DNA of 64,000 nucleotides. Origin: Phaeosaccion multiseriatum (lineage: Eukaryota > Protista > Ochrophyta, other classes). The DNA is taken from contig OZ218957.1 of assembly GCA_965112735.1 (NCBI GenBank), forward strand, positions 1,426,001 through 1,490,000. Direction: 5' to 3'. The notes beneath the pieces are model-generated. The model ran no database searches and had not been told where the DNA came from. It saw only the letters and a list, made by a program, of their open reading frames with translations. The position numbers and the translations under genes are program-made. Each line of letters begins with the position of its first letter. The first letter of the stretch is position 1. This document shows, one piece after another, positions 11,569 to 59,462 of this stretch.

Positions 11569-11944
11569 GGTGTATTATTCTCCTATCTTGAGAGAGGGCC
11601 TATATATTTTTTCACAAAGGGGAGGGCGCCCTCTGCCGAGAGGTAGGCTCTGCCCAAGACCACCTCCTCCTCTTCCTCTGGCGTCTGCTGCTGCTCCTGC
11701 AGTGCCTCCTTTCTCCCTTCCTGATGTATTACTTATTGGCCCTTCCTGGTATATTTTTGCTTTCCTGCTGCTCTGTCCGATAAATCGGCCGTTACACCTA
11801 CGTAAGTCAGTAACATGTCCACTGAAACTCAAATCCTACATTGTGGGCATGCACCACCCTTCAGCGTTCCCGCAGCAGCAGCCCCCTCCAGTTGTGGTGA
11901 AGTTCGGCTGCTGAGAGGGAGGGAAAGAGCGAGCGAGAAACAAG

Positions 11945-12146
<202 letters not shown>

Positions 12147-12694
12147 GAATAGAAGAGCAGAGAGAGATCGAGCGTGGCAAGAGGAGTACCGCCCTGGAAA
12201 GAGAAGGAAAGGTTACACCGCCTGCTCCCAAACTTTAGGCTGGGGGTCTGTATTTTCCCTCTCTTTACAACGGACTGGAGAGTGATACGCTAGAGGCGCT
12301 AAGCTAAGGCCTTCAGCAGGGTTTCCCGGAGGGAGAGGAGGGGAGGAAGTGGTGGTGGGAGAGGTTGTCTCCCAAGGACGACGACATCCTGCGTAGGATT
12401 CATCGATTCAACCTTCAGCCAAGTCCTCCCACTTTTTTTGTGAGGAGCCACTCAGAGCTGGTGAGCGTTAACGGGCGAGACTTCTGTCTTTCAGGACTAC
12501 GGCGAGAACTCTGAGGGAAAGGCCCTGAGGAGAGGTAATCTTTGTTTTGTGTTGAAGGGCCTTTTCCTCAGAGCTGGGGTTCCCTTCACACCCTAATCTC
12601 TCATCCCTTTGATCTGTTGAAGAACTCTCTGAGGAGAAGACCCTCTGTCTCGCAGCCGGGATCCAAAAACGGTGGACTGGGGAGGGGTGGGAAA

Positions 12695-15600
12695 TGTATA
12701 TTAGAGCTTATGGGCTCAGTATTGGTGCGCTCGAGGTAAGTTGTAACCATGTGTAGATGCGTGTATGTGTGGTATTGATGGAGCGTGATGTGGAGGGGAA
12801 GAGGATGGTAAGGGTGGTAGAGTAGAGGATAATGGGGAATGGGAAGGGAGTGAGGGGGGGAGGAGGAGATGAAGGGGTGTGGGAAGGAGTGAGGTGGTGG
12901 AGGTGATATGTGAACTATCCTACTGTGGGTGGTGCGGGTGACAAGGCGTGACTAACTGTGGTTGCTATGCTGTGTGCTGATGGTCTCGCTGTCTGCTGGC
13001 TGGTGTACTCCTGCTCCTCAGGCGGCCGCTCCGTCGATGGCTCCCATGAGCCCCCAGTCGAGGGTTTCTGCTGCTTCGTGCTGCGTCATCGTGGCTCGAA
13101 GGAGGGTGCCATACCTGATCTCCCGCTGTGAGAGGGCGCGTTGAAGGGCGAGGGACAGTTGTTGGCGCAGGAGGCCCTTGATGGGGCCCGTGGCTGCCGC
13201 CGCTGCGGGGCCGAGCCCTCTTGATGCCTTGTGGATGGCCATCGCCTCGATGAGCTCGTCCGTTTGGTGGCCCAGTCTGCCGTACGTCTCGATCGCAATG
13301 CACTTGAGGGTTGAAGTCCCGGGCAGAAAACTGCCCAGGTAGTGCGTGCGCTTGCGCTCTTCGGCGGCGGCTGCTGCGTGGCCTGGCGTGGTGGAGGCCC
13401 GTCCCACGTGGGTGGGGGCGGTGGGGTTGGTGACGGTGATGTCGCAGAGGAGGTTTCTCCGCAGGGGTGCGTCCGCTCCCGGGAAGCTACCTGCGGGATA
13501 GGTCAGATCCATGCGTAGGTCTCGGCCTGCTCGGGTGCCCGTGGGGCCGTCGAAGCAGGTCTGGTCCTCTACGCGTGCTCCTCCAATGCCCACGCTGTGC
13601 ATCATCCTCCCGAAGGCCTTGACGAGGAGGTGGTGTGTGTGGTTGTGGAGGCCGGTGCGGGGGCAGATGGTGGCGTGGGTGGTGCTTGCCGTGCGGGCGC
13701 AGCCTGTGCCGAGGCAGGGTGGGGGCGGGTCCGCGTATGGCGTGTTGACACCGAGGTTGCGACGAAGGGCCATGGTCCATTCTGCGGGGGCCATGGTGTT
13801 GTGGCCGTGGGGGGAGCGCTCCGAGGAAGGCCATGGCGCCCCCTTCCTCGCTGTGAGTGGAGTCGGGCTGTTGCCATTTCCTGTGTCTCCTCTCCCCTCT
13901 GTGCCTCTGCCGGTGTGACGTCGATGGTGGCGATGCTCTGCGTCAGCTCCTCATGGCGGCGTTTGTGGATGAAGGTGGTGAGGGCCTTCTGGACGCCGTG
14001 GGTCGGTTGACGGCCTGCCTGATGGCTCCTGCGCACGTTGCGTCGCGCTGTGTCTTGGGCTTGGTGGTCAGGCGGCTCGAGTACGCGTGAGCGGGCCTCG
14101 TCGAACTGTGCCTGACCCACTGCTTGGATGAGGGGGGCCTCAGGGACCCCCTCCTCGTGCAGGGAGGTTGACGCTGTCGGCGACGCTCTTGAGGGCTCCG
14201 TTGGTGAACAGCTGGTCCGGTAGGGCGCTCTCTTGGGAGCCTTCCCGGCGTGCGGTGCGGCTGAGCAGGGGGGAGGGTGAGCATCTTGTTGCCAAGGTAT
14301 GCTGCTGGGGCGATGTCATGGAGGCTGGTGAGGCCGAGGCCGCCGAAGCGCCGTGCCGTATGCATTTGTAGGCGCTGTGTCTCCGTCCATGGCTCCTCTT
14401 GTGCATCTGCGGCCTGCTCCAGAGGGGGCATCGGGGAGTCGCATGATGTGGGCCAGTGTCGCCCTGTTGGTGCGGTCTGCCCTGCTGCCGAGGGCGCGTC
14501 GGAAGATGGAGGGGTCAATGGCTCTCGCCAGGTGTGTGAGCCTGGCTGGGAGGCATTGGAGGAGGACGAGGGTGGCCGCCTGGGTGTTGTCCCACTCGCT
14601 GCAGTGTTTGGCGAGTTGGAGGTAGCCCCTGGGGTCTTCTTGGCCGAGGATGTTGCGGAGGTACTCTTCGATGTACTCCTCCGTGCCGACGGGGATGCCG
14701 GCTACCACGGTACCCTCGGTGGCTAGTGTGGCGCCCTGCCGTTGGGCGTGGTCCCTGTCAGCCTGTGTTGGCTGCTTGCCTTTGCCCATGAGGTAAACCG
14801 TTTTCCTCTCGTTGAACTCGAGGCCCAAGCCTCGGAATTGGGCTTGGAGATGGGCATGTCGTGGGGCGTAGGTCTCTAGGGGTGCGTCGGGTTCCAGCTG
14901 GTCCATGAGGTCGTCTGCGTAGGCGGAGATGGTGGGGCGGTTCGCTGCGGTGTCGGCTGTGTTCTGAACTTTCAGCACTGGGTGGATGGCGGCTGCGAAC
15001 ATGAGAGGCCCTTCTGGTGCTCCTTGGTTGACTCCGGAGCTCTGGTGGATGGTCTGGGTGCCGTCTGGTGTGAGGGCGTTGTGGGCGGAGGCGTGGGAGA
15101 GGCTGGCGATGGCGTAGTTGATGCCTGCTGGGTCGATGGTAGGGAGTGCTCCTGAGGCTAGGACGCCTCTGGCACGCGACACGCGGGTGTAGGCCTTGGT
15201 GATGTCATGCAGCACGACGGTTTTGCCGGCATCGTGCGCTAGCTGGGCTGCTGCGGCGTGTGTTTCCCCTCCGCCTCTGACCGCTACCGCTAGCTGTCCT
15301 GCGCTTCTGAGCTCTGGGCCCACCCTGTCCGCGATGAGCTTCATGTGACAGCTCTCCACGAGGCTGCGGTAGAGGTTGGGGGATGTCACAGGACGCGCTT
15401 TCTCGCCGAGGGCTGCGGCGCTGGTGCTGAACCACCGTTTGGCGAGCTGTGGAGGCAGTGGAGTGTCCCCCGTTCGGAGCAGCTCGTAGGTGTCAGTCAG
15501 AGCCTCCACGATTGCGTACTCCTGGGGGCTGTCCGGGGGTACTTGACGTGGCTCGCCCTGCGCCCGTCTGCTCCTTGGCCCTTCCAGAAGTTGACCCTCC

Positions 15601-18600
15601 GGTAGGTCAGCAGCATGGCTGTGCTGATCTCCTCTCTGGTGACGTCGTTGCCATTCTCGGGGTGCTCCTGCACCTGGGTTCTGGCGTACTCCCCTGGCTG
15701 CTGCTGCTGCTGTGTTGATCTCTTCGAGGCTCTCGTCGACGTGCGCTTGCTGGAGGCGTCTAAAGGTCTCGTGTGTGTGGGAGGGAGGTGGCCGTCTCTG
15801 CTCTTTGTGCTGAGCCTCGCGGCGGCCTTGTGCAGGCCTCCGGGTTTGGTGAGCAGGTGGGCGCAGGTTTCTCTCCGTCGCTCCTCTGTCTGTGCCTGTG
15901 CTGGGGGTGGTGGGCGGCGTGCGTGTGCTGTGGCTATCGCTGCTTGTGCGAGTGGGGCGATGTCGAGGTCGAGGACCATCTGTATCCGCTGCTGGCGGCT
16001 GTAGGCTCCGTCTTTAGAGAAGAGCATGGCAGGGAGGAGGTGGTGGAAGACATCCCATGCCAGAAGGGTGTGGAGGGTGGCGTCGGTGGGGCCGTTCTTG
16101 TGGGCCCTCAGCGCCCTGTTCCAGTTGTTGAGCGCTCTTTGCTGTAAAGCTGATAATCGAGCTGACGTGGCGGGGGTTGCACTGCGCTACTGTCTCAAAC
16201 ACGAGTGTTGAGAGGATGGTACCCTGCGGGTCCAGGGCCCCTAGGCGGAGGACGTTTGGGTGCTGCATGGGCCATCCTTCCTCGGGGTGTATCGTCGTTG
16301 GCTGGCCCTTCTCCGTCCCCTCCGTCCCCGCCGCTACCTCCTTGGCCTCTGCTCCGTCCTCCTCCCCCCTCGTCTCGCTGCTGCTGCTGTGGTTCCTTGC
16401 GTGCGTGTGCTATCTCCCCCTGCCCTTTCTCTCTGAGGTCCCCTCTCTGCTGCTGCTCCTTGTCCGTTTCCTTCCCCCCTCCCTCGTCCTCCTCTTCCTC
16501 CTTCTACTCCACTTGGCGCTGCTGCGATTGCTCCTCCTCCTCCTCCTCCTCCTCCTCCTTCCGCGTGCCCTCGCCCTCCTCCTCTGCCCGTGGGGGTGGT
16601 GGGTTGGTACGGGTTGAGCCTGGCCGTTTGCTGTCGTGTGCTGGGGCGTTGCCGTACGCGACGGGTCCCTCGTTTGGGTCTGGGCCTAGATAGGCGTTCT
16701 CGAGGTCGTTGAGGGGGCCTTGGTAGGCCGATGCTGCGTTGCCTTGGGTGAGGATGGTCCTGAGGGCGGGGATGGCTCGTTGAGCTTGGTAGCCAGCCAT
16801 GCAGCCTTGCGCGGGGCAGGGGAGGTTGCCTGGTGGTATGACGGGCTGCTGGTTGGCTCTCCTCAGTGTGGCTTGGTCGTTCAGGTGGTGAAGGAGGCAC
16901 GCGGGGTGAACGGTGTGTTGGCAGCGTCGGGTGCGTACTGGCCACTCCGTGGTTGGTGCGATGAAAGGGGGGTCCGCGTCTGACATGCATATGCAGCATA
17001 TCGGGGCTGGGGGGGCGGTAGGTTGGGGTGGGGGTGTGTGTCGGGTGGTGGGGGGTGGCTGGGACTGGCGGCGTCGCCCTTGGCTGGCCTGCGCGTGCTG
17101 CTGATGCGACTCTCTGCGCTCCCTCGCTAGGCGATCCCTTGCGCGGCCCATAGCTCTCCCTCCTTGTGCTGTGATGGCCTGCTCGATCGTGTGCCGGTAG
17201 CAGGGGTTGCGGCAGTAGGGGCAGAGGTGGTCGTTGCGGTTGGGGTACCTGCTCATGACTCCCAATGCGCAGTGGTTGTGCACGTGATGTTCGCCTTCGT
17301 GCATGGCGACTTGTGCTTGGCCAGTGAGCGGTTCCATACACACCGGGCAGTTGGGTAGCTCCTCGTTGTTGGTGGGGTCGCCTCCTCCTTCTCCTTCGTC
17401 ACCTCCTCCCGCTGCTTGCCCTTCCCCTCCTTCTGCCGCTGCTTCCCGTGCCAGTGCTGGGCGCTCTCCTCCGCCTCTGCTGTTTTCGCCCTCTTCCCCC
17501 CTGCTACTACTCTTCCTTCGCGGTCTCCTCGTCCCCCTCCCCTGTGTCCCGCTCGCTCTCCTCTCCCTCCTCCCTCCTGGTCGTGCTCTCGTGTAGTGTC
17601 TGTCCCACCTGCTCTTGTCGGTGGGGGCATGCTTCGAGCTCGTTGGATGGTTGGCGGTGCTGGTAGGCTTGCGGCTTCGTGTGCTCGTATGCAGGCGTTG
17701 CATAGGGGTTGTCGTAGGCCTGATTGCGGGAAGCGGGTAAGGAAGGATCTGCCGGAGTTTCGGTGGGCCAGGTTGCCGCATCCACTTGTGCAGTCCCGGA
17801 GCTGGTACGTATTATTCTGTGGTCCGCTCTGTGGGCCGTTGGCGCGGTACCACAGGATTGACGCGGCCTGGGGGTGGTGTTCGCGCATCCATCGGTCCCA
17901 CTCTCTGCCGCGGTTCGGGTGGTGGCTCGACTGGTGCCTGATGAGGCGGTCTCTTGTGTTGCCTACCGTGACGAAGGTGTCGTGGCATTCGCCAAAGTTG
18001 CAGAGGATGCCCCCTTGAATGTTTCCATTGTCGGGGTGTCTTCGGTACACTCGGGCGTTGTTGGGGTTGTCCTCCGGTGTTGGTGGGCTGGGTGTGGTTG
18101 CGTCGCTTTGGGCGGGGGGTGGTGGCGGTCCTGGTGCGGTTCCCCGGGGGGCCTGTCTCGTGCGTAGGGCGAGGGCTTGCCCCGGCGCCCACCACGGTGT
18201 GGCCATGGTGTTGGCGAAGGGGGAGGTGGTGGTGTTGTTGGTGTGGTCGCGTAGGGCGTGGCCGTAGCGCTCAACGATGGCTTGGACGTCGGGTAATACC
18301 GCGATGAGTTCCTCCTGTCGTGAGGCGGTGATGTAGTCGTTGACCAACTCGTTGGAGGTGATCTCTTGGCCTGCGAGCGTGTGGGCATAGGCCTCCACGA
18401 TCTGTTGCCATCCAAGGGGGTAATCTCCTCCCCCATGTGGTCTTCCGGGGGTGGTGGGGGGGCCTCCGCTCCTTAGAGCTTGTCTGAGGAGGGGCATATA
18501 GAAGTGCGAGTTGGTAGGCGGGAGCGCCGCGTCGCGCTGGTGGCGTATGGTGTTGCTCCATGTCGTTGGTGCGTGTCCATGCGTGTCTGTTTCGAGTGAT

Positions 18601-19440
18601 GCTGTCTCTTCCTCGTGCGTCGTGGGGGGTGGTCGTACGAGGTCGGCGATGGCCTCGGCCGTGTTGTGGTGGGTCAGTTCCGTCGCGGTGAGGTTTAGGC
18701 TTGCGAACTCAGCGCTGATGCGTCGGCTGGCGGATGCTGGCGCTTGTTCGTTGAAGAAGAGGTTCGGGTGTTGCCGTATGGGGGTCGTGGCTGTGAGGTG
18801 GGTGTCTTCGTATTCGTCTTGGAGGATGGAGACGATTTGCTCTGTGATCCCGTGTGCGTTTCTGTGAGTTGACGCGTTGGTGGTTTGGGCTGGATCTGAG
18901 GCTCGGAAAGTGGCGGTTGGCCTTTCCGGGCTGCGTGCTCGGGGGGTCCTGCTTCGTCCCCTTGGCCTCGTGGTTGGCTGCATGGGTGCTGGGCTGGTCG
19001 CTGTGGGGGGTGGTGCTGTTGTAGGGCCTGTTGTCTCGCTGGCGGGCGTGGTAGATCTCCTGGCGGCTGGTGCTGTTTGTTGCCGTGTCGTTGAGATCGG
19101 TTGTGGTTGCTGCTGCTGGGGGTGGGCTTCCGCTGCTGTTGCTGTGGGTTCCGTGAGTGCTGGTGGGAGCTGTGGGTCCTGCGGGAGGGTGTTGCGGGGT
19201 GCTGCGGCCGCTGGTGGAGCCGTGATGGGGGTGGGCACGCCTTCCCGTGCTGGTGTTTGGCGAATTGCTGCTGCCGCTGCCCGTCTCTCCCTTCTTTCGA
19301 GCCGCTGCTGATCGCGGCTCATAGGTGGCTCCTGCTGGGTTGCTGTGAGGTTTGCTGGTGTCTCCTGGGCTCCGGGGGGCCGCGTGGCCCCCCTGTCGTC
19401 CCCTTCCATGGTGGCCCTGTCTTAAGCAGAAAAAAAAGAA
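12695..19440 (-). mobile_element. Full-length CRE-like non-LTR retrotransposon, copy 1 (~6.7 kb)
   Basis: RT motifs QLAVAVRGGGE, HDITKAYTRVSR, GVNQGAPEGPLMF, AYADD. RLE motifs C..C......H...C, RMDL, CDITV, AEERKRTHY, IAIETYGRL. Flanked by degenerate target copies GAGGGGTGGGAAA (12682-12694) and GAGGGGTGTGGGAAA (19441-19455). Confidence 0.93.
13018..19409 (-). CDS. Probable single long ORF (~2,100 aa): low-complexity N-terminus, C2H2 finger, two RING fingers, reverse transcriptase, CCHC knuckle, restriction-like endonuclease; split by 1-2 bp indels
   Basis: ORF pieces 17253..19409, 16504..17781, 16014..16268, 15497..16027, 14316..15509, 13943..14518, 13602..14120 and 13018..13794 join at short indels. 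Many of these junctions read through in copy 2 (ORFs 21055..24009 and 19935..21434). Confidence 0.8.
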
Positions 19441-19611
19441 GAGGGGTGTGGGAAAAGCATTCGCAGCAGGGCGGACTTTGCTCGGGCCACGGAGCTGTGA
19501 GAATGCGTAAGACGTGCACTGTGGAGGGGTGTGAGAAGCAGTCACATCAGGGAGGATTATGCAGGAGGCATGGAGCTGTGGTCAAGAGGTGTACCGTGGA
19601 AGGGTGTGAGA

Positions 19612-22600
19612 TGTATATTAGAGCTTATGGGCTCAGTATTGGAGCGCTCGAGGTAAGTTGTAACCATGTGTAGATGCGTGTATGTGTGGTATTGATGGAG
19701 CGTGATGTGGAGGGGAAGAGGATGGTAAGGGTGGTAGAGTAGAGGATAATGGGGAATGGGAAGGGAGTGAGGGGGGGAGGAGGAGATGAAGGGGGGTGGG
19801 AAGGAGTGAGGTGGTGGAGGTGATATGTGAACTATCCTACTGGGGGTGGTGCGGGTGACAAGGCGTGACTAACTGTGGTTGCTATGCTGTGTGCTGATGG
19901 TCTCGCTGTCTGCTGGCTGGTGTACTCCTGCTCCTCAGGCGGCCGCTCCGTCGATGGCTCCCATGAGCCCCCAGTCGAGGGTTTCTGCTGCTTCGTGCTG
20001 CGTCATCGTGGCTCGAAGGAGGGTGCCATACCTGATCTCCCGCTGTGAGAGGGCGCGTTGAAGGGCGAGGGACAGTTGTTGGCGCAGGAGGCCCTTGATG
20101 GGGCCCGTGGCTGCCGCCGCTGCGGGGCCGAGCCCTCTTGATGCCTTGTGGATGGCCATCGCCTCGATGAGCTCGTCCGTTTGGTGGCCCAGTCTGCCGT
20201 ACGTCTCGATTGCAATGCACTTCAGGGTTGAAGTCCCGGGCAGAAAACTGCCCAGGTAGTGCGTGCGCTTGCGCTCTTCGGCGGCGGCTGCTGCGTGGCC
20301 TGGCGTGGTGGAGGCCCGTCCCACGTGGGTGGGGGCGGTGGGGTTGGTGACGGTGATGTCGCAGAGGAGGTTTCTCCGCAGGGGTGCGTCCGCTCCCGGG
20401 AAGCTACCTGCGGGATAGGTCAGATCCATGCGTAGGTCTCGGCCTGCTCGGGTGCCCGTGGGGCCGTCGAAGCAGGTCTGGTCCTCTACGCGTGCTCCTC
20501 CAATGCCCACGCTGTGCATCATCCTCCCGAAGGCCTTGACGAGGAGGTGGTGTGTGTGGTTGTGGAGGCCGGTGCGGGGGCAGATGGTGGCGTGGGTGGT
20601 GCTTGCCGTGCGGGCGCAGCCTGTGCCGAGGCAGGGTGGGGGCGGGTCCGCGTATGGCGTGTTGACACCGAGGTTGCGACGAAGGGCCATGGTCCATTCT
20701 GCGGGGGCCATGGTGTTGTGGCCGTGGGGGAGCGCTCCGAGGAAGGCCATGGCGCCCCTTCCTCGCTGTGAGTGGAGTCGGGCTGTTGCCATTTCCTGTG
20801 TCTCCTCTCCCCTCTGTGCCTCTGCCGGTGTGACGTCGATGGTGGCGATGCTCTGCGTCAGCTCCTCATGGCGGCGTTTGTGGATGAAGGTGGTGAGGGC
20901 CTTCTGGACGCCGTGGGTCGGTTGACGGCCTGCCTGATGGCTCCTGCGCACGTTGCGTCGCGCTGTGTCTTGGGCTTGGTGGTCAGGCGGCTCGAGTACG
21001 CGTGAGCGGGCCTCGTCGAACTGTGCCTGACCCACTGCTTGGATGAGGGGGGCCTCAGGGACCCCCTCCTCGTGCAGGAGGTTGACGCTGTCGGCGACGC
21101 TCTTGAGGGCTCCGTTGGTGAACAGCTGGTCCGGTAGGGCGCTCTCTTGGGAGCCTTCCCGGCGTGCGGTGCGGCTGAGCAGGGGGGGAGGGTGAGCATC
21201 TTGTTGCCAAGGTATGCTGCTGGGGCGATGTCGTGGAGGCTGGTGAGGCCGAGGCCGCCGAAGCGCCGTGCCGTATGCATTTGTAGGCGCTGTGTCTCCG
21301 TCCATGGCTCCTCTTGTGCATCTGCGGCCTGCTCCAGAGGGGGGCATCGGGGAGTCGCATGATGTGGGCCAGTGTCGCCCTGTTGGTGCGGTCTGCCCTG
21401 CTGCCGAGGGCGCGTCGGAAGATGGAGGGGTCAATGGCTCTCGCCAGGTGTGTGAGCCTGGCTGGGAGGCATTGGAGGAGGACGAGGGTGGCCGCCTGGG
21501 TGTTGTCCCACTCGCTGCAGTGTTTGGCGAGTTGGAGGTAGCCCCTGGGGTCTTCTTGGCCGAGGATGTTGCGGAGGTACTCTTCGATGTACTCCTCTGT
21601 GCCGACGGGGATGCCGGCTACCACGGTACCCTCGGTGGCAAGTGTGGCGCCCTGCCGTTGGGCGTGGTCCCTGTCAGCCTGTGTTGGCTGCTTGCCTTTG
21701 CCCATGAGGTAAACCGTTTTCCTCTCGTTGAACTCGAGGCCCAAGCCTCGGAATTGGGCTTGGAGATGGGCATGGCGTGGGGCGTAGGTCTCTAGGGGTG
21801 CGTCGGGTTCCAGCTGGTCCATGAGGTCGTCTGCGTAGGCGGAGATGGTGGGGCGGTTCGCTGCGGTGTCGGCTGTGTTCTGAACTTTCAGCACTGGGTG
21901 GATGGCGGCTGCGAACATGAGAGGCCCTTCTGGTGCTCCTTGGTTGACTCCGGAGCTCTGGTGGATGGTCTGGGTGCCGTCTGGTGTGAGGGCGTTGTGG
22001 GCGGAGGCGTGGGAGAGGCTGGCGATGGCGTAGTTGATGCCTGCTGGGTCGATGGTAGGGAGTGCGCCTGAGGCTAGGACGCCTCTGGCACGCGACACGC
22101 GGGTGTAGGCCTTGGTGATGTCATGCAGCACGACGGTTTTGCCGGCATCGTGCGCTAGCTGGGCTGCTGCGGCGTGTGTTTCCCCTCCGCCTCTGACCGC
22201 TACCGCTAGCTGTCCTGCGCTTCTGAGCTCTGGGCCCACCCTGTCCGCGATGAGCTTCATGTGACAGCTCTCCACGAGGCTGCGGTAGAGGTTGGGGGAT
22301 GTCACAGGACGCGCTTTCTCGCCGAGGGCTGCGGCGCTGGTGCTGAACCACCGTTTGGCGAGCTGTGGAGGCAGTGGAGTGTCCCCCGTTCGGAGCAGCT
22401 CGTAGGTGTCAGTCAGAGCCTCCACGATTGCGTACTCCTGGGGGCTGTCCGGGGGGTACTTGACGTGGCTCGCCCTGCGCCCGTCTGCTCCTTGGCCCTT
22501 CCAGTAGTTGACCCTCCGGTAGGTCAGCAGCATGGCTGTGCTGATCTCCTCTCTGGTGACGTCGTTGCCATTCTCGGGGTGCTCCTGCACCTGGGTTCTG

Positions 22601-23846
22601 GCGTACTCCCTGGCTGCTGTTGCTGCTGTGTTGATCTCTTCGAGGCTCTCGTCGACGTGCGCTTGCTGGAGGCGTCGAAAGGTCTCGTGTGTGGGAGGGA
22701 GGTGGCCGTCTCTGCTCTTTGTGCTGAGCCTCGCCGCGGCCTTGTGCAGGCCTCCGGGTTTGGTGAGCAGGTGGGCGCAGGTTTCTCTCCGTCGCTCCTC
22801 TGTCTGTGCCTGTGCTGGGGGTGGTGGGCGGCGTGCGTGTGCTGTGGCTATCGCTGCTTGTGCGAGTGGGGCGATGTCGAGGTCGAGGACCATCTGTATC
22901 CGCTGCTGGCGGCTGTAGGCTCCGTCTTTAGAGAAGAGCATGGCAGGGAGGAGGTGGTGGAAGACATCCCATGCCAGAAGGGTGTGGAGGGTGGCGTCGG
23001 TGGGTCCGTTCTTGTGGGCCCTCAGCGCCCTGTTCCAGTTGTTGAGCGCTCTTTGCTGTAAGCTGATAATCAAGCTTACGTGGCGGGGGTTGCACTGCGC
23101 TACTGTCTCAAACACGAGTGTTGAGAGGATGGTACCCTGCGGGTCCAGGGCCCCTAGGCGGAGGACGTTTGGGTGCTGCATGGGCCATCCTTCCTCGGGT
23201 GTATCGTCGTTGGCTGGCCCTTCTCCGTCCCCTCCGTCCCCGCCGCTACCTCCTTGGCCTCTGCTCCGTCCTCCTCCCCCTCGTCTCGCTGCTGCTGCTG
23301 TGGTTCCTTGCGTGCGTGTGCTATCTCCCCCTGCCCTTTCTCTCTGAGGTCCCCTCTCTGCTGCTGCTCCTTGTCCGTTTCCTTCCCCCCTCCCTCGTCC
23401 TCCTCTTCGTCCTTCTACTCCACTTGGCGCTGCTGCGATTGCTCCTCCTCCTCCTCCTCCTCCTTCCGCGTGCCCTCGCCCTCCTCCTCTGCCCGTGGGG
23501 GTGGTGGGTTGGTACGGGTTGAGCCTGGCCGTTGCTGTCGTGTGCTGGGGCGTTGCCGTACGCGACGGGTCCTCGTTTGGGTCTGGGCCTAGATAGGCGT
23601 TCTCGAGGTCGTTGAGGGGGCCTTGGTAGGCCGATGCTGCGTTGCCTTGGGTGAGGATGGTCCTGAGGGCGGGGATGGCTCGTTGAGCTTGGTAGCCAGC
23701 CATGCAGCCTTGCGCGGGGCAGGGGAGGTTGCCTGGTGGTATGACGGGCTGCTGGTTGGCTCTCCTCAGTGTGGCTTGGTCGTTCAGGTGGTGAAGGAGG
23801 CACGCGGGGTGAACGGTGTGTTGGCAGCGTCGGGTGCGTGCTGGCC
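19612..23846 (-). mobile_element. CRE-like retrotransposon copy 2a (3' end through RT; stops in the second RING region)
   Basis: Near-identical to 12695-16943. Preceded by target GAAGGGTGTGAGA (19599-19611) and followed by GGGGGGGGTGTGAGA (23847-23861). Confidence 0.9.
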
Positions 23847-23861
23847 GGGGGGGGTGTGAGA

Positions 23862-26101
23862 TGTATAGCAGGGGTTGCGGCAGTAGGGGCAGAGGTGGTC
23901 GTTGCGGTTGGGGTACGTGCTCATGACTCCCAATGCGCAGTGGTTGTGCACGTGATGTTCGTCTTCGTGCATGGCGACTTGTGCTTGGCCAGTGAGCGGT
24001 TCCATACACACCGGGCAGTTGGGTAGCTCCTCGTTGTTGGTGGGGTCGCCTCCTCCTTCTGCTTCGTCACCTCCTCCCTCTGCTTGCCCTTCCCCTCCTT
24101 CTGCCGCTGCTTCCCGTGCCAGTGCTGGGCGCTCTCCTCCGCCTCTGCTGTTTTCGCCCTCTCCCCCCCCTGCTACTACTCTTCCGTCGCGGTCTCCTCG
24201 TCCCCCTCCCCTGTGTCCCGCTCGCTCTCCTCTCCCTTCTCCCTCCGGGTCGTGCTCCCGTGTAGTGTCTGTCCTACCTGCTCTTGTCGGTGGGGGCATG
24301 CTGCGAGCTCGTGGTGGGATGGTTGACGATGCCGGGAGGTGTGCTGCTTCGTATGCTCGTATGCATGTGTGGCATATGGGCTGCCGTAGGCCTGCTTGCG
24401 GGAAGCTTCTGAGGAGGGATCTGCCGGAGTTTCTGTGGGCCAGGTTGCCGCATCCACGTATACAGTCACGTAGCTGATACGTTCTGTTCTGTGGTCCGCT
24501 CTGTGGGCCGTTGGCGCGGTACCACAGGATTGACGCGGCCTGGGGGTGGTGTTCGCGCATCCATCGTTCCCACTCTCGGCCGCGGTTGGGGTGGTGGCTC
24601 AACTGGTGCCTGTTGAGGCGGTCTCTGGACCTGCCGACCGTGACGAAGGTGTCATTGCACTGTTCGAAGTTGCAGAGGACTCCCGTGGCGATGTAGTTGT
24701 TGTCAATGTTCCTGCGGTACGCTGTGGTGTTGTTGTGGGTGTCGTCCGTCTGTGGCGTGGTTGTGTCACTTTGGGTGGGGGGTGTTGGCGGTCCTGGTGC
24801 GGTTCCCCGGGGGGCCTGCCTCGTGCGTAAGGCGAGGGCTTGCCCCGGCGCCCACCACGGTGTGGCCATGGTGTTGGCGAAGGGGGAGGTGGTGGTGTTG
24901 TTGGTGTGGTCGCGTAGGGCGTGGCCGTAGCGCTCAACGATGGCTTGGACGTCGGGTAATACCGCGATGAGTTCCTCCTGTCGTGAGGCGGTGATGTAGT
25001 CGTTGACCAACTCGTTGGAGGTGATCTCTTGGCCTGCGAGCGTGTGGGCATAGGCCTCTACGATCTGTTGCCATCCATGGGGGTAATCTCCTCCCCCTTG
25101 TGGTGTTCGGGGGGGGGGGGGGGGGCCTCCGCTCCTTAGAGCTTGTCTGAGGAGGGGCATATAGAAGTGCGAGTTGGTAGGCGGGAGCGCCGCGTCGCGC
25201 TGGTGGCGTATGGTGTTGCTCCATGTCGTTGGTGCGTGTCCATGCGTGTCTGTTTCGAGTGATGCTGTCTCTTCCTCGTGCGTCGTGGGGGGTGGTCGTA
25301 CGAGGTCGGCGATGGCCTCGGCCGTGTTGTGGTGGGTCAGTTCCGTCGCGGTGAGGTTTAGGCTTGCGAACTCAGCGCTGATGCGTCGGCTGGCGGATGC
25401 TGGCGCTTGTTCGTTGAAGAAGAGGTTCGGGTGTTGCCGTATGGGGGTCGTGGCTGTGAGGTGGGTGTCTTCGTATTCGTCTTGGAGGATGGAGACGATT
25501 TGCTCTGTGATCCCGTGTGCGTTTCTGTGAGTTGACGCGTTGGTGGTTTGGGCTGGATCTGAGGCTCGGAAAGTGGCGGTTGGCCTTTCCGGGCTGCGTG
25601 CTCGGGGGGTCCTGCTTCGTCCCCTTGGCCTCGTGGTTGGCTGCATGGGTGCTGGGCTGGTCGCTGTGGGGGGTGGTGCTGTTGTAGGGCCTGTTGTCTC
25701 GCTGGCGGGCGTGGTAGATCTCCTGGCGGCTGGTGCTGTTTGTTGCCGTGTCGTTGAGATCGGTTGTGGTTGCTGCTGCTGGGGGTGGGCTTCCGCTGCT
25801 GTTGCTGTGGGTTCCGTGAGTGCTGGTGGGAGCTGTGGGTCCTGCGGGAGGGTGTTGCGGGGTGCTGCGGCCGCTGGTGGAGCCGTGATGGGGGTGGGCA
25901 CGCCTTCCCGTGCTGGTGTTTGGCGAATTGCTGCTGCCGCTGCCCGTCTCTCCCTTCTTTCGAGCCGCTGCTGATCGCGGCTCATAGGTGGCTCCTGCTG
26001 GGTTGCTGTGAGGTTTGCTGGTGTCTCCTGGGCTCCGGGGGGCCGCGTGGCCCCCCTGTCGTCCCCTTCCATGGTGGCCCTGTCTTAAGCAGAAAAAAAG
26101 A
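23862..26101 (-). mobile_element. CRE-like retrotransposon copy 2b (6-nt 3' tip fused to the 5' third of a variant subfamily)
   Basis: Begins with the element 3' tip TGTATA, jumps to the equivalent of 17198 and runs to the same 5' end as copy 1 (CTTAAGCAGAAAAAAAGA). Its C2H2 region is divergent from copy 1. Confidence 0.85.
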
Positions 26102-26109
26102 TGGGGTGT

Positions 26110-26294
26110 CACGACCCGGAGGGAGAAGGGAGAGGAGAGCGAGCGGGACACAGGGGAGGGGGACGAGGAGACCGCGACGGAAGAGTAGTAGCAGGGGGGG
26201 GAGAGGGCGAAAACAGCAGAGGCGGAGGAGAGCGCCCAGCACTGGCACGGGAAGCAGCGGCAGAAGGAGGGGAAGGGCAAGCAGAGGGAGGAGG
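26110..26294 (+). mobile_element. 185-bp inverted fragment of copy 2b at its 5' junction
   Basis: Reverse complement of 24070-24254 carrying 2b-specific bases; overlaps the target copy AGGGTGTGAGA (26292-26302). Confidence 0.9.
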
Positions 26295-26383
26295 GTGTGA
26301 GAAGCATCGGGTCCAAGGAAGATTATGCACTAGGCATGGAGCTGTGAGGACACGTAAGAGGTGTACTGTGGAGGGGTGTGAGA

Positions 26384-27379
26384 TGTATATTAGAGCTTAT
26401 GGGCTCAGTATTGGAGCGCTCGTCTCGATTGCAATGCACTTCAGGGTTGAAGTCCCGGGCAGAAAACTGCCCAGGTAGTGAATGCGCTTGCGCTCTTCGG
26501 CGGCGGCTGCTGCGTGGCCTGGCGTGGTGGAGGCCCGTCCCACGTGGGTGGGGGCGGTGGGGTTGGTGACGGTGATGTCGCAGAGGAGGTTTCTCCGCAG
26601 GGGTGCGTCCGCTCCCGGGAAGCTACCTGCGGGATAGGTCAGATCCATGCGTAGGTCGCGGCCTGCGCGGGTGCCCGTGGGGCCGTCGAAGCAGGTCTGG
26701 TCCTCTACACGTGCTCCTCCAATGCCCACGCTGTGCATCATCCTCCCGAAGGCCTTGACGAGGAGGTGGTGTGTGTGGTTGTGGAGGCCGGTGCGGGGGC
26801 AGATGGTGGCGTGGGTGGTGCTTGCCGTGCGGGCGCAGCCTGTGCCGAGGCAGGGTGGGGGCGGGTCCGCGTATGGCGTGTTGACACCGAGGTTGCGACG
26901 AAGGGCCATGGTCCATTCTGCGGGGGCCATGGTGTTGTGGCCGTGGGGGAGCGCTCCGAGGAAGGCCATGGCGCCCCTTCCTCGCTGTGAGTGGAGTCGG
27001 GCTGTTGCCATTTCCTGTGTCTCCTCTCCCCTCTGTGCCTCTGCCGGTGTGACGTCGATGGTGGCGATGCTCTGCGTCAGCTCCTCATGGCGGCGTTTGT
27101 GGATGAAGGTGGTGAGGGCCTTCTGGACGCCGTGGGTCGGTTGACGGCCTGCCTGATGGCTCCTGCGCACGTTGCGTCGCGCTGTGTCTTGGGCTTGGTG
27201 GTCAGGCGGCTCGAGTACGCGTGAGCGGGCCTCGTCGAACTGTGCCTGACCCACTGCTTGGATGAGGGGGGCCTCAGGGACCCCCTCCTCGTGCAGGAGG
27301 TTGACGCTGTCGGCGACGCTCTTGAGGGCTCCGTTGGTGAACAGCTGGTCCGGTAGGGCGCTCTCTTGGGAGCCGTCCC
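26384..27379 (-). mobile_element. CRE-like retrotransposon copy 3, 5'-truncated and internally deleted
   Basis: Perfect 13-bp TSD GAGGGGTGTGAGA at 26371-26383 and 27380-27392. Retains the terminal ~38 nt, then lacks the 553 bp equivalent to 19651-20203. Confidence 0.93.
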
Positions 27380-28516
27380 GAGGGGTGTGAGAAGCAGCGG
27401 ATTCAAGGAGGATTGTGCACTAGGCATGGAGCTGTGGTCAAGACTTGTACTGTGGAGGGGTGTGAGAAGCATGCAAGAGGTGGATGTGATGGGATGTGTA
27501 CACGCCATGCTCGAATGAAAAGGGAGGGAGCGGAGCAAGCGGGGAAGATAACCCAGGGCACGCCTAAACCCAAGCGAGGAGCTGCCACCGACATCGACAC
27601 GAGAGGCAGGAAGAGGGCGAAGTTCGCCCCTTCAGTTGAGGGAGGGGAGAGGCAGCAGGAAGAGAAGGAAGCAGCGGAGGAGGATGGGGATGGAGTAGGC
27701 TTGCTTGCGAGGCTGGGGCTTCATGTCGGGGATGAGATTCAGCTTCCCAATGGCCTGTGGAGAGAGCTGGAAGATGCTGCTGCCGACGCTGCCATAGCCT
27801 GCTGGGGCCACCAGGATAGGCAGCTGTCGAATGGCGTGGTGGTGTCTGTGGGCCAGAGTAAGGTGTTGCTGCTGCCCCACTACGCTGTGCGCACGAAGAG
27901 GAAGGGGACCAGCCTGGAGAGTACGATTCGAGGCTTTGTGTCTGCCTACCAGCGCTATCGCTCAGGAGGAGGAGGGGGTGACGAGGATGACGAGAAGCAG
28001 CAGGACGAGTGGGAGGTGCTGGAGGAGGGCATGGTGGTGGCGAGTGAGAAGAAGAGGCGGGGACGGAAGGCGCTGCGAGCGTGCGTGCGTGTGGGGGGAG
28101 TGGCAGGGGCTTGTGCTGGTGCTGATACCTCGGGACTGGGGATGTAGTGACGCGAAGCCGTCCGCCTCATCGCCTGCCAATCTTCGCCGCGGTGAAGCTT
28201 GGCTTGCACCATCGTACCATGAGCGAGTCGTAAGAGCAATTTGTTTATGACTCGCACCAGCTTATTGTAAGTAATGTACAAAAGGAAATTTACGGAAAGA
28301 AGAGTGGAAGAAATGCCTTTTGATGGTGTCGACCCCCAGAGGGCGACCGAGGAAACGGAATCGTGCAGAGCAAGAGGGGCAATTTTTTTAGAAGATGTGA
28401 TTGTACAGTGGGGTGTGGATTGGGTTTAGCATTTGGAAGGGGGGTGAGAGGAGCTTGGGGGAGAATGAGAGAACCACCGCTGTACCGAAGGGAACCACCA
28501 GAGACAGGATGAAGTC

Positions 28517-50294: not shown

Positions 50295-51272
50295 TAGGGA
50301 CCAACCGCCGATTTCGCAGACGCAGCTGTTGCCCAGACGACCAACACGCCCACCAAGACTCACAGCAACCCCGACAGCATCACAGCGCAAATCGTCGCAA
50401 TACTGAGAGAGGAATGCGACGACGTACACCTCACAGCCACCACCCCACTCACCTCACACACCATCTACTCCTCTGACGACCAAAGCGCCAGCCCGCGCCG
50501 GTCGATGCATCAGCGCCATGTTTCCCAACCTCAACCTCACGGCGAAGGAGCTGATACACCACAACACCGCAGAGGTCATCGCCGACCTCGTACGACCACC
50601 CCCCACGCCAACTGAGGAAGGGACAGCCGCACAGACAGAAACAGACACGCACGGACACGCACCAACGACATGGACGAACACCATACGCCACACCCAGCAT
50701 CTCCTCCCTGTACATTCATGCCCCTACTCAGAGCGGCTCTAAGGAGCGGAGGCCCACCAACACCCCCGGAAGAGCACAGGGGGGAGGAGATTACCCCCAC
50801 GGATGGCAACAGATCGTAGAGGCTTATGCCCATACGCTTGCAGGCCAAGGGATCACCTCCAACGAGTTGGTCAATGACTACATCGCCACCTCACGACAAG
50901 AGGAACTCATCGCGGTATTACCCGACGTCCAAGTCGTCGTAGAGCGTCGCGGCCACGCCCTACGCGACCACACCAGCAAGAATACCACCTCCCCCTTCGC
51001 CAACACCATGGCCACAGCGTGGTGGGCACCCGGCCAAGCCCTCGCCCTACGCACACGACGGGCCCCCCGGGGAATTGCACCAGGACCACCAGCACGCCAC
51101 GCCTAAAGTGACGCCACCACACCCAGTCCACCAACGACGAAAGACGCCCCCAACGACCCCCGAGTGTAGCTACCGAAGGAATCAAAGCAACGTATACGTT
51201 CAAGGGGGCGTCCTCTGCAACTTCGGCGACTACCCGCCCCAACACTTTCGTCACGGTCGGCGCCACCAGAGA
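50295..51272 (+). mobile_element. Old, diverged fragment of the same retrotransposon (N-terminal region)
   Basis: Translates to NLTAKELIHHNTAEVIADLVRPPP, VNDYIATSRQEELIAVLPDVQ and GGVLCNFGD, matching copy 1 at 18900-17950, with frameshifts. Confidence 0.9.
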
Positions 51273-51906
51273 CGCCGCTGGACGGAGGAGGAGGGGGCGT
51301 CGACGACGAAGGCGAGGACAGAGGTGCTGCTGCTGCCGATGATGTTGTTGGCGGCGAGGAGGACAAACTGATGCCGTCATGAGAGAGAGGGAGAGAGAGA
51401 GCGGAGAACGGAGAGGGTCTGATGGGGGCCTTGAGAGAAGGTACCGTCGTGCGAAGGAAGGCATCGGTGGTTGGAGACGACTCCTTTATTTACGGGCGGA
51501 GGGCGCAGAGGGGCGAAGGGAGGGACCCCTCTATTGGTATCTGTCGCCTGCTCTCTCTCTCTCTCTGAGTAGCGGCGGTCATGCTCTCTCTCTTTGCGTG
51601 CGTATGTGGGTGTGTGGGACAGCCAGGCAGACCTCCTTGTCAGACGTACCTCCTCTTGTCTCTTCGCTCATCGCACATCGTGACCGCCTCTTACCTCTGC
51701 CCCCCCGAACCGTAGACTTGACCATACGCCACCACCCGAACCCACACCCTGTACATTTGTCCGTGGGGCCGGCGGCCCTCTCAATGTATGTATCTGATTG
51801 AGGACGCCGAGATGGGGAGATTCTAATCACAATAGACTACACTGAAACTGCGCATCCTATCGCCATGGCCTGCGTGAGAGGTGTGAGGTGTTTGCGTAAA
51901 TGATAC

Positions 51907-56487: not shown

Positions 56488-56490
56488 ATA

Positions 56491-57781
56491 TCGGGGAGTC
56501 GCATGATGTGGGCGAGGGTCGTCCCGTTGATGCGGTCTGCCCTGCTGCCCAGGGCGCGCCTGAAGTTGTTGGAGGCTATGGGTTTCGCTAGGTGGGTTAG
56601 CCTGGCTGGGAGGCATTGCGTGAGCATGAGGGTGGCCGCTTGGGTGTTGTTCCATTCGCTGCAGTAGTACAACACGCAAGGAGCCACCCTCATGCTTACG
56701 CAATGCCTCCCAGCAAGGCTCACACACCCAGCGACAGCGATGGACCCAACCATCTTCAGACGCGCCCTGGGCAGCAGGGCAGACCGCGTCAACAGGACGA
56801 CCCTCGCCCACATCATGCGGCTCCGAGACACACCCACTCTCGAACGGGCCGCAGACGAACAAGAGGAGCCCTAGACGCCCCCACAACGCCTTCGAATCCA
56901 CACGGCAAGGCGCCATGGACGCCTCGGCCTCACCAGCCTCGACGCCATCGCCCCCCCCAAGCGGCACACCTCGGCAACAAAATGCTGACCATCCCGCCCA
57001 TACTCTGTCGCATCGCACGCCCAGGAGGGCCCCACGAACACGTCCTACCGGAGCAGATGTTTGACGACGGCGTACTCAAGAGCGTCGCAGACAGTATAAA
57101 CCTCCTAATGCGGGGAGGGGATCCCCGACGCCCCCCTCATCCAAGCGGTAGGGCAAGACCACTTCGACGAAGCACGCTCACGTGTACTGGACTCGCCCGA
57201 CCAATACGCCCAATGCACAGCGAGACGTACCATCCACAGGCCACGTCAGGGGGGCTGCCCATCGACCCGTGGAGTACAAAAGGCCCTCACCACCCACATC
57301 CAAAAACGCCGCCAGCAGGAGCTGGTGCAGAGCACGGCCACTATCGAGGTCACAACCGCAGAGGCACAGAGGGGAGAGGAGACGCACCAATGGCAGCAGC
57401 CCGCCTTCCCTCCCAGCGAGGGGGCGCCGTGGCCTTCCTTGTAGCACTCCCCCACGGCCCCAATACAATGGCCCCAGCAGAATGGACCATGCCCCTGCGT
57501 CGCAACAATGGCATCACCACCGCAATACGCAGACCCGCCCCCACCCTGCCTCGGCACAGGCTGCACCCGTACGGCAAGCACCAGCCATGCCATCATCTGC
57601 AAGCACCAGCCATGCCATCATCTGCTCGCGCACCGAGCTCCACAATCATACCCACCACCTCCTCGTCAAGGCCTTCGGGAGGATGATGCACAGCGTGGGC
57701 ATCGGCGGAGCGAGAGTGGAGGACCAGACCTGCTTCGACGGCCCCACCGGTACCAGAGCGGGACGAGACCTCAGGATGGAT
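56491..57781 (+). mobile_element. Diverged retrotransposon fragment (post-RT to RLE) with a fold-back inversion at its 5' side
   Basis: 56670-57781 encodes QCLPARLTH...FRRALGSRADR...HHLLVKAFGRMMHSVGIGG...GRDLRMD; 56491-56665 is the same region on the minus strand. Confidence 0.9.
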
Positions 57782-58064
57782 ATGGCAGTAGACGGCAGTG
57801 GATGGAAGGGATGGAGAGAGGGGGGGAGGTGGGCGGAGGGAGGGAGGACGGCGAAGGAAGCCTCTCCTTGCCCCTTCCATCCTGGACCGCCCCTCCATTC
57901 GGTGCTGCTATATCACCCGCTCCCCCTCTCCCCCTCTCCCTCCTCTTCCCCTTCCTCCCCCTCAGCCCCCTTTTCCGTTCCCCTCCTCCTCCTCCTCCTC
58001 CTCCTCCTCCTCCTCCTCCTCCTCCTCCTCCTCCTCCTCCTCCTCCTCCTCCTCCTCACCCCTC

Positions 58065-58250: not shown

Positions 58251-58297
<47 letters not shown>

Positions 58298-59462
58298 CGC
58301 GTGTGTGTGTGTGCGTGCGTGTATGTGCGTGTGTGCGTGTATGTGCGTGTGTGTGCGTGTGTGTTGCGTGTGCACAGGGTGGTTTCATTCGTGGGTTGTG
58401 TCAAGTTGTTGCCAGCTGTTGCCAGGGACCGGGGTCGTCCACTGCCATCCACCCCTGCCTACTTCCCTCTACCCCCTCTCCCCTCACCCTCTTTGCCCCA
58501 CCTCACCGCCCGCCCCCCCCATCCACTGCCATCAACCTTACCTCCTCCGCCTGCATGGCGGCCCTGCCCCTCGCCTCCCGCACGGCCTCCTCCGCACTCC
58601 GCTCAACCTCTTCCCTCTCCCTCCGGCACAGCGCAAGCAGGCTCCTCCTCGCCTCCCTGCCCGTGTCAGAGAGGAAGAAAAAAGAAAGACGGATCATGAC
58701 GGTTACATCATGGCTACAGCACCAGGGGAGGCAATATACCTATAGATCAACCCATAGTACTACAACTACAACTGGCTTTCCAAGACAAGTGACTCTGTCT
58801 CTCTCTCTGACTCATCACACCTGCCCGTGGTGATACTCCTCTCGGCGCTCTGCAGCTTCTCGCGCAGGATGGCGGTGCTGTGCCTTGACGCAGCAAGGGC
58901 CTGAGAGGGAAGGAGGGAGAGGGGGGGGGGGGAGTAGTGTGTGGAAGGTAGTATGGTGTGAGAGGGTGAGGGGAGAGGGTAGGATTAAGGCAAAGCACGG
59001 TGGCGTGAGAACGTGTGGTGTCCTCTGCGCTCTGTGCTGCTCTGCCCATATGCCTACCCACATGCCCCTGCCCATATGCCTGCCCATATGCCTCTGCCCA
59101 TATGCCTATACGCAGCCCATATGCCTCTGCCCATATGCCTATACGCAGCCCATATGCCTCTGCCCATATGCCTATACGCAGCCCATATGCCTCTGCCCAT
59201 ATGCCTCTGCCCATATGCCTATGCCTACATGCCTTAAACCCCTCCCCTCCCACCGCACCTCCTCTGCTGCCTGGAGGTCTTCAACGCGACTGTCTACATC
59301 GGCCTGGCACACACGGAGGCCCTCCTCCATGGCGTCTGCTCGCTCCCGCTCTGTAGAGGGATGGATGGCAGAGGATGGAAGGGGATGGGGAGGGATGGCA
59401 GCGGATGGAGGGGATGGGATTGCTGATGATTACAACCAAACAACAACAACAACAACAACAAT

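Follow-up and report, generated by a model that had tools for sequence, protein, structure and literature searches.

The survival of site-specific retrotransposons is ascribed to targets that are redundant, non-coding or RNA genes. R2, which inserts in the 28S ribosomal DNA (rDNA), is under development for gene insertion, and some R2 elements carry a target-derived 5′ leader that helps 5′ joining; Tx1L targets another repeat and uses an apurinic/apyrimidinic (AP) endonuclease. To our knowledge, neither Tx1L nor Dada has a protein-domain coding motif as its target. Dada, a DNA transposon, uses a multicopy landing pad (PMC3706591). According to Kojima and Jurka, site-specific elements target repetitive sequences, e.g. 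ribosomal RNA genes and microsatellites; Utopia is present in stramenopiles (oomycetes) and targets U2 small nuclear RNA (snRNA) genes, and the target arrays of Utopia, NeSL and CRE/SLACS may be filled by several copies, disrupted targets outnumbering the intact ones in some species (PMC4640811). An R2 review of October 2026 speaks only of rDNA and of specificity being lost (PMC13580325). In a 64,000-nt window of the genome of Phaeosaccion multiseriatum (contig OZ218957.1, positions 1,426,001 to 1,490,000 of the forward strand; hereafter the window), four insertions of one retrotransposon family without long terminal repeats (non-LTR) were identified within a zinc-finger gene. The element is very probably a sequence-specific non-LTR retrotransposon of the restriction-like-endonuclease type, homing to the codons of WRKY19-type fingers by target-primed insertion.

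The first-pass annotation of the window had known of no described case of this kind, and our literature search likewise found no site-specific retrotransposon with a protein-coding repeat as its target. With R2, the element shares the order of reverse transcriptase (RT), linker, CCHC knuckle and PD-(D/E)XK endonuclease, R2 being the best structural match, as well as precise target-primed insertion, truncated 5′ ends, zinc fingers at the N-terminus and the lack of poly(A). In contrast to R2 in rDNA, it resides in a protein-coding repeat, the flanks being finger codons, and has RING-type fingers and a 700-amino-acid N-terminal extension; no Myb domain was found (Pfam), the sequence similarity to R2 is marginal (E-value 0.47), and no hepatitis delta virus (HDV)-like ribozyme was found. 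Since the element lies antisense to the transcription of its target, co-transcription with the target is unlikely.

Utopia, NeSL and CRE/SLACS are likewise restriction-like-endonuclease elements in moderately repeated gene families, but their targets are small RNA genes (U2 snRNA, spliced leader), and filled sites are the minority in the present case. The RNase H of oomycete Utopia and the Ulp1 protease of NeSL were both missing from the Pfam matches of the element. With Tx1L and Dada it has in common the use of a multicopy sequence as a safe landing pad. The element differs from R2, Utopia, NeSL and CRE in the protein-domain codon string as target, the antisense placement and the unusual N-terminal half; the layout of the enzyme, target-primed insertion at a precise point and residence in a repeated target are common to all of them.

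Insertion sites in the window

All four insertions were on the minus strand, each antisense to the finger frame. The 25-nt 3′ terminus of the element, TGTATATTAGAGCTTATGGGCTCAG, was present at 12695, 19612 and 26384 (0 expected by chance), and the junction at 23862 consisted of TGTATA alone, followed by element-internal sequence. At all four coordinates the target directly preceded TGTATA, as had been annotated from the sequence. The 13-nt target pattern GRRGGGTGKGARA occurred 8 times in the window against 0.07 expected. On the plus strand the flanks encoded CTVEGCEK..GGLC..HG repeats, and a 29-amino-acid repeat (19524-19610) matched the Pfam family Zf_WRKY19 (PF24906) with 29.4 bits over a cut-off of 27.

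Once the duplicated target copies were removed, five sites were left: S0 (12682=19441), S1 (19524), S2 (19599=23849=26290), S3 (26371=27380) and S4 (27455). Sites S0, S2 and S3 were occupied, S2 having been hit twice, and S1 and S4 were empty. The claim of three occupied repeats out of five was thereby upheld, together with the two identical empty sites at 19524-19536 and 27455-27467 and the perfect 13-bp target-site duplication at 26371-26383/27380-27392.

Target specificity across the genome

In the genome assembly (67.1 Mb, 22 contigs), the 25-nt terminus gave 131 matches with at most three mismatches on 13 contigs, and none with a reversed control. The reading of 72 termini out of these 131 or more resulted in 65 distinct 60-nt flanks. 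Flank positions −9 to −1 read GGTG[C/T]GA[G/C]A, the fixed positions being kept in 59-65 of the 65 flanks; this near-invariant logo speaks against unrelated flanks, the alternative raised by the first-pass annotation. Finger codons of the type C-x-V-E-G-C-E/D, from many different repeats, made up 46 of the flanks, all in one orientation with the element antisense. The proposal from the window, a protein-domain codon motif as landing pad, is thus supported genome-wide at nucleotide precision.

In a further 12 flanks, the terminus was preceded by element DNA, direct or inverted, and then a target remnant of mostly 6-15 nt, and these are head-to-tail or twin-priming-like pile-ups. The remaining 7 represented degenerate fingers or true off-targets that retain GTGTGAGA. 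Of the exact consensus sites, 62 carried the element and 251 were empty (control, 1). Site occupancy was also compared in sampled neighbourhoods, a sample biased toward places with insertions: 40 of 69 sites ending in GAGA were filled against 8 of 35 ending in GAYA (p=8e-4), and only 1 of 10 sites with a Gly codon other than GGG (p=0.05). The preference of GAGA over GAYA would fit sequence reading at position −2.

The exact 3′ terminus was not found in JGI metagenomes. The flanks on contigs of four distant relatives (L051-L054) contained no finger codons, although the element ends were not recognisable there.

Independence of the insertions and their 5′ ends

The 39 copies for which both ends were available stopped at 31 or more distinct 5′ positions, with target-site duplications of 0-13 nt (mode 11-13), and the element copies were 97-100% alike. 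Because the copies differ in both truncation point and duplication length, the insertions are independent target-primed events, and neither tandem duplication nor misassembly of a single insertion, which the first-pass annotation had held open, accounts for the array. A fixed 3′ end, variable 5′ truncation and short, variable duplications are the marks of target-primed reverse transcription, and all were observed.

The full-length 5′ end reads, on the target sense strand, ...CTTAAGCAG, seven or eight A's, GA[A/T]GGGGTGTG and then target. In one copy (L005), the TGTG-type leader comes directly after a TGC-type site duplicated over 11 nt, which argues that the leader belongs to the RNA and came from a TGT-type site. 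Transcription would then begin a few bases inside the upstream target copy, and we infer that the leader could aid annealing of the cDNA for second-strand synthesis. In four copies (L006, L018, L020 and L022), the target at the 5′ junction (GCGACA or GCGATA) differed from that at the 3′ junction (GCGAGA), which suggests 5′ joining in a neighbouring finger or later conversion.

Some copies were multiplied together with their flanks, the truncation points 949 and 608 recurring. On contig C1 (678774-695044; L018-L025), a 4.1-kb unit of two truncated element copies plus fingers was repeated four times in tandem. The element copies thus seem also to promote unequal crossing-over in the target arrays.

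Protein encoded by the element

The RT domain RVT_1 was detected with 32.5 bits against a cut-off of 29.6. A word-based homologue search with the RT returned one match only. HMMER recovered 826 RT-bearing relatives among 1.8 billion representatives; the nearest were metagenome proteins of at most 32% identity. The last 299 residues were aligned with 24 relatives, and in the resulting 25 sequences C68, H81, C85, D137 and D159 were invariant and E117 and K189 nearly so. The AlphaFold2 (AF2) model of this region had a predicted local distance difference test score (pLDDT) of 89.5, and in a Foldseek query against PDB it matched R2 retrotransposon proteins at ranks 1-7, followed by cap-snatching and other PD-(D/E)XK nucleases and Prp8. 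On the basis of alignment, model and structural matches, the endonuclease is of the restriction-like PD-(D/E)XK type with a CCHC knuckle, downstream of the RT, in agreement with the type first annotated. By sequence, R2 was barely detectable with phmmer.

Upstream of the RT, one clear RING finger and a second RING-like motif were identified, and further upstream a C2H2-like finger with a CxxC...CxxC module. An AP-type endonuclease was searched for in all open reading frames (ORFs), and none gave an Exo_endo_phos match at E-values up to 0.1. Pfam searches likewise found no RNase H, protease or Myb domains. Each pair of neighbouring segments shares one frame in at least one copy, which would point to a family plan of one ORF with roughly 2,100 codons. 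A programmed −1 frameshift linking an ORF1 with an ORF2 was considered and rejected, as the shifts differ among copies and each junction is in frame somewhere.

Proposed insertion mechanism

The element protein would nick the coding strand of the finger repeat between the two A's of GAGA|AG, i.e. in the Glu/Asp-Lys codons after the Gly-Cys codons. The released 3′-OH would prime reverse transcription of the element RNA, the 3′ end of which would be ...UAUACA without poly(A), and with a primer on the coding strand every copy would therefore come to lie antisense to the finger gene. Such orientation was confirmed for all elements of the window and all 46 finger-codon flanks. Cutting of the second strand probably takes place about 11-13 nt upstream, which would produce duplications of up to 13 nt (GAGGGGTGYGASA), and incomplete reverse transcription would leave the 5′ truncations. 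At the start of full-length RNAs there would be some 11 target-like bases (CACACCCC[T/A]TC), possibly of use in sealing the 5′ junction. Where and in which order the two strands are cut, and recognition of the site by the protein, are proposals; the precision of the junctions, the element anatomy, the domain types and the fact that the insertions are independent were shown.

The landing pad is a coding motif present in many copies: some 250 of its consensus sites stand empty, in about 70 or more paralogues that lie in clusters. The invariant core of the target overlaps the codon of a zinc-ligand Cys. As the core overlaps such a codon in a multicopy motif, we infer that the target can hardly escape by mutation, and that the cost of any one insertion is low.

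A number of observations weigh against this reading or narrow it. Each of the five full-length copies examined carried at least one frameshift, for which assembly errors are a possible cause, and the N-terminal finger region, modelled with AF2 without an alignment, gave an unusable pLDDT of 37. The element was not seen in public RNA runs, nor an empty allele in public reads; these reads were short assembled contigs, the depth of which is not readable as copy number. Joints in the public reads that skip the element were rejected as empty alleles, as they derive from other loci. In an Rfam scan of one full-length copy (copy A) with its flanks, no HDV-like or other ribozyme was found, only two chance-level matches, and the tandem arrays do not reveal which half of the site is read. 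The class assignment holds at the level of the restriction-like-endonuclease non-LTR group. The same Rfam search found no snRNA or spliced-leader RNA at the junctions.

Target gene family and alternative explanations

The C-terminal domain of the zinc-finger gene in the window gave 128 matches in the genome, of which about 70 were open across the whole domain in frames of 250-610 amino acids. The family clusters on contigs C8, C1, C13 and C2, in subfamilies 62-96% identical to the window copy, and of the element termini listed, some nine in ten fell, on comparison by eye, within these clusters or next to them. The ratio of nonsynonymous to synonymous divergence (dN/dS) amounted to 0.38-0.58 when subfamilies were compared with each other, and the two closest copies compared gave 0.93. 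The target protein had no homologue among 5.8 billion public proteins, and only its fingers were recognised by Pfam. The open copies, the dN/dS between subfamilies and the lack of public homologues point to a coding, lineage-specific family under moderate purifying selection.

The dense packing of the 128 matches into few clusters, the dN/dS of 0.93, the missing homologues and the blank Pfam result beyond the fingers would also suit a target that is itself another selfish or lineage-specific repeat, as Tx1D is for Tx1L. Site-specificity would then still hold, and only the description as a protein-coding host gene would be overstated. We regard this as improbable, as the roughly 70 open copies and the dN/dS between subfamilies indicate constraint at the protein level, the copies stand in tandem arrays and are not dispersed, the finger itself is a member of a Pfam family, and no transposase, RT or terminal repeats were seen beside the target copies in the loci read. 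Slightly better odds, though still poor ones, may be given to a choice of target made mainly by base pairing, in which target sequence carried by the RNA or cDNA, as a read-through tail or as a leader, would anneal to nicked finger DNA. The 11 target-like bases at the start of full-length copies speak for it, as do the 6-15 nt target remnants between tandem copies, which are expected from templates carrying target sequence. The leader is, however, of the TGTG type, yet the insertions on C1 are equally precise in TGCGAGA, TGCGACA, TGCGATA and TGTAACA, where a pairing tail would mismatch; the first element base at the 3′ junction never varies, and the filling of sites depends on position −2.

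Untargeted spread of one or a few old insertions, carried through the finger arrays as these underwent tandem duplication, unequal crossing-over or gene conversion, is already contradicted and can hardly be sustained. It does describe some of the copies, such as those in the fourfold 4.1-kb unit (C1 at 678-694 kb) or those with the recurring truncation points, but it leaves unexplained at least 31 truncation points, differing duplication lengths and differing upstream finger sequences, insertions on 13 contigs, and off-target copies outside finger genes that retain the core. Homing to the finger codons by target-primed insertion is thus retained. A repeated protein-domain codon string can accordingly serve as a landing pad, which widens the known target space, and the locus is a clear case of a mobile element that shapes and erodes a gene family from within, its copies promoting tandem duplication of the target genes. 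The element also offers a predicted natural DNA-reading nick-and-copy enzyme for comparison with R2.

Variable zinc-finger cassette

In the zinc-finger region of the element (nt 1301-1800), copies otherwise 98-100% alike diverged by 18-30%. The cassette is located in the window at 17641-18140 in copy A and at 24313-24790 in copy C. Two discrete forms were found: form 1 in 20 copies (12 on C1, 7 on C8), 99-100% identical to the cassette of copy A, and form 2 in 15 copies (2 on C1, 11 on C8), 82% identical to it. Target sites on C1 have TGC as the Cys codon, and those on C8 have TGT. The spread of the two forms over C1 and C8 was uneven (p=0.012), a skew that local hopping would equally yield, and the counts are inflated by tandem pairs. 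Strict pairing of cassette form with Cys codon was unsupported, since both forms occurred at TGC-type and TGT-type sites.

Synonymous divergence (dS) was 0.33 within the cassette against 0.015 upstream of it, and dN/dS was 0.45. Positive selection on the cassette was consequently rejected, the signal being that of high dS and old divergence, and the forms are two old, constrained modules inside an otherwise homogenised element. A link of the cassette to target specificity would be only a lead, and the two forms make it possible to ask directly how specificity is altered or preserved in such enzymes. As a speculation with little probability, the element may be a party to an arms race, homing to the unchangeable zinc-ligand codons of a fast-expanding finger family, the members of which are possibly repressors of mobile DNA, like the vertebrate KRAB zinc-finger clusters; the cassette forms would then be two natural specificity modules. 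If so, the element protein would be an insertion enzyme with a swappable reader.

Organisation of the window

Copy A (12695-19440, minus strand) is full length, ca. 6.74 kb, and its 3′ junction lies at site S0 (12682-12694, plus strand), in the degenerate finger GAGGGGTGGGAAA. Its 3′ end is ...TATACA without poly(A), the ATG is at 19409, and several frameshifts interrupt the frame; the 5′ leader ends in a T run plus target-like bases. On the minus strand, copy A carries the linker, CCHC knuckle and PD-(D/E)XK restriction-like endonuclease at 13018-13794 (alignment, AF2 model, Foldseek), the RT core RVT_1 at 14787-15311 (E-value 8.8e-8), the RING-type finger upstream of the RT at 17209-17352 (profile search) and, in the variable cassette, the C2H2-like finger and CxxC...CxxC module.

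The target-gene fingers F1-F2 follow on the plus strand at 19441-19611, with the S0 duplicate at 19441-19455, the empty S1 and the occupied S2 at 19599-19611. Copy B (19612-23848, minus strand), 5′-truncated at element position 4249 from the 3′ end, is separated from copy C by the target remnant GGGGGGTGTGAGA (23849-23861, plus strand). In copy C (23862-26109, minus strand), 4.5 kb of the element are missing, so that the tip TGTATA is fused to its 5′ 2.24 kb; the 5′ end is complete, with the leader GATGGGGTGT. The joint at 23849-23868, in which the target remnant and the 6-nt tip meet an internal element position, could stem from template jumping or from a second use of a site already occupied, and its structure does not separate the two.

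The 5′ junction of copy C is marked by an inverted 185-nt element fragment (26110-26294, plus strand) of twin-priming-like appearance, the right junction of which is spanned by a 112-nt public-read contig of unique-level depth. Finger F3 (26290-26383, plus strand) contains the occupied S3 at 26371-26383. Copy D (26384-27379, minus strand) is 5′-truncated at 1553 and has an internal deletion of 551 bp. The rest of the target gene, i.e. the 13-bp duplication 27380-27392, fingers F4-F5 with the empty S4, and the family-specific C-terminal domain up to the stop, extends over 27380-28147 on the plus strand. Upstream of copy A only a degenerate finger without an open frame was seen. The finger gene of the window is therefore now a wreck, the 5′ half of which is not visible; this half may have been missing, or the gene dead, already.

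For 26751-26975, one 225-nt element-identical contig of very low depth was met in a run labelled another organism (X7), which could mean that the element is shared or that the run was cross-contaminated. At 50301-51273 and 56490-57784, outside finger genes, there were older fragments with 78-85% identity to the element, one with an inverted duplicate; they have no recognisable junctions, and an earlier or related family may have left them as relics. Long microsatellites of the (GA)n and (CA)n types were present at 11893-12150 and 58260-58390, the (GA)n run lying just upstream of the wrecked finger gene.

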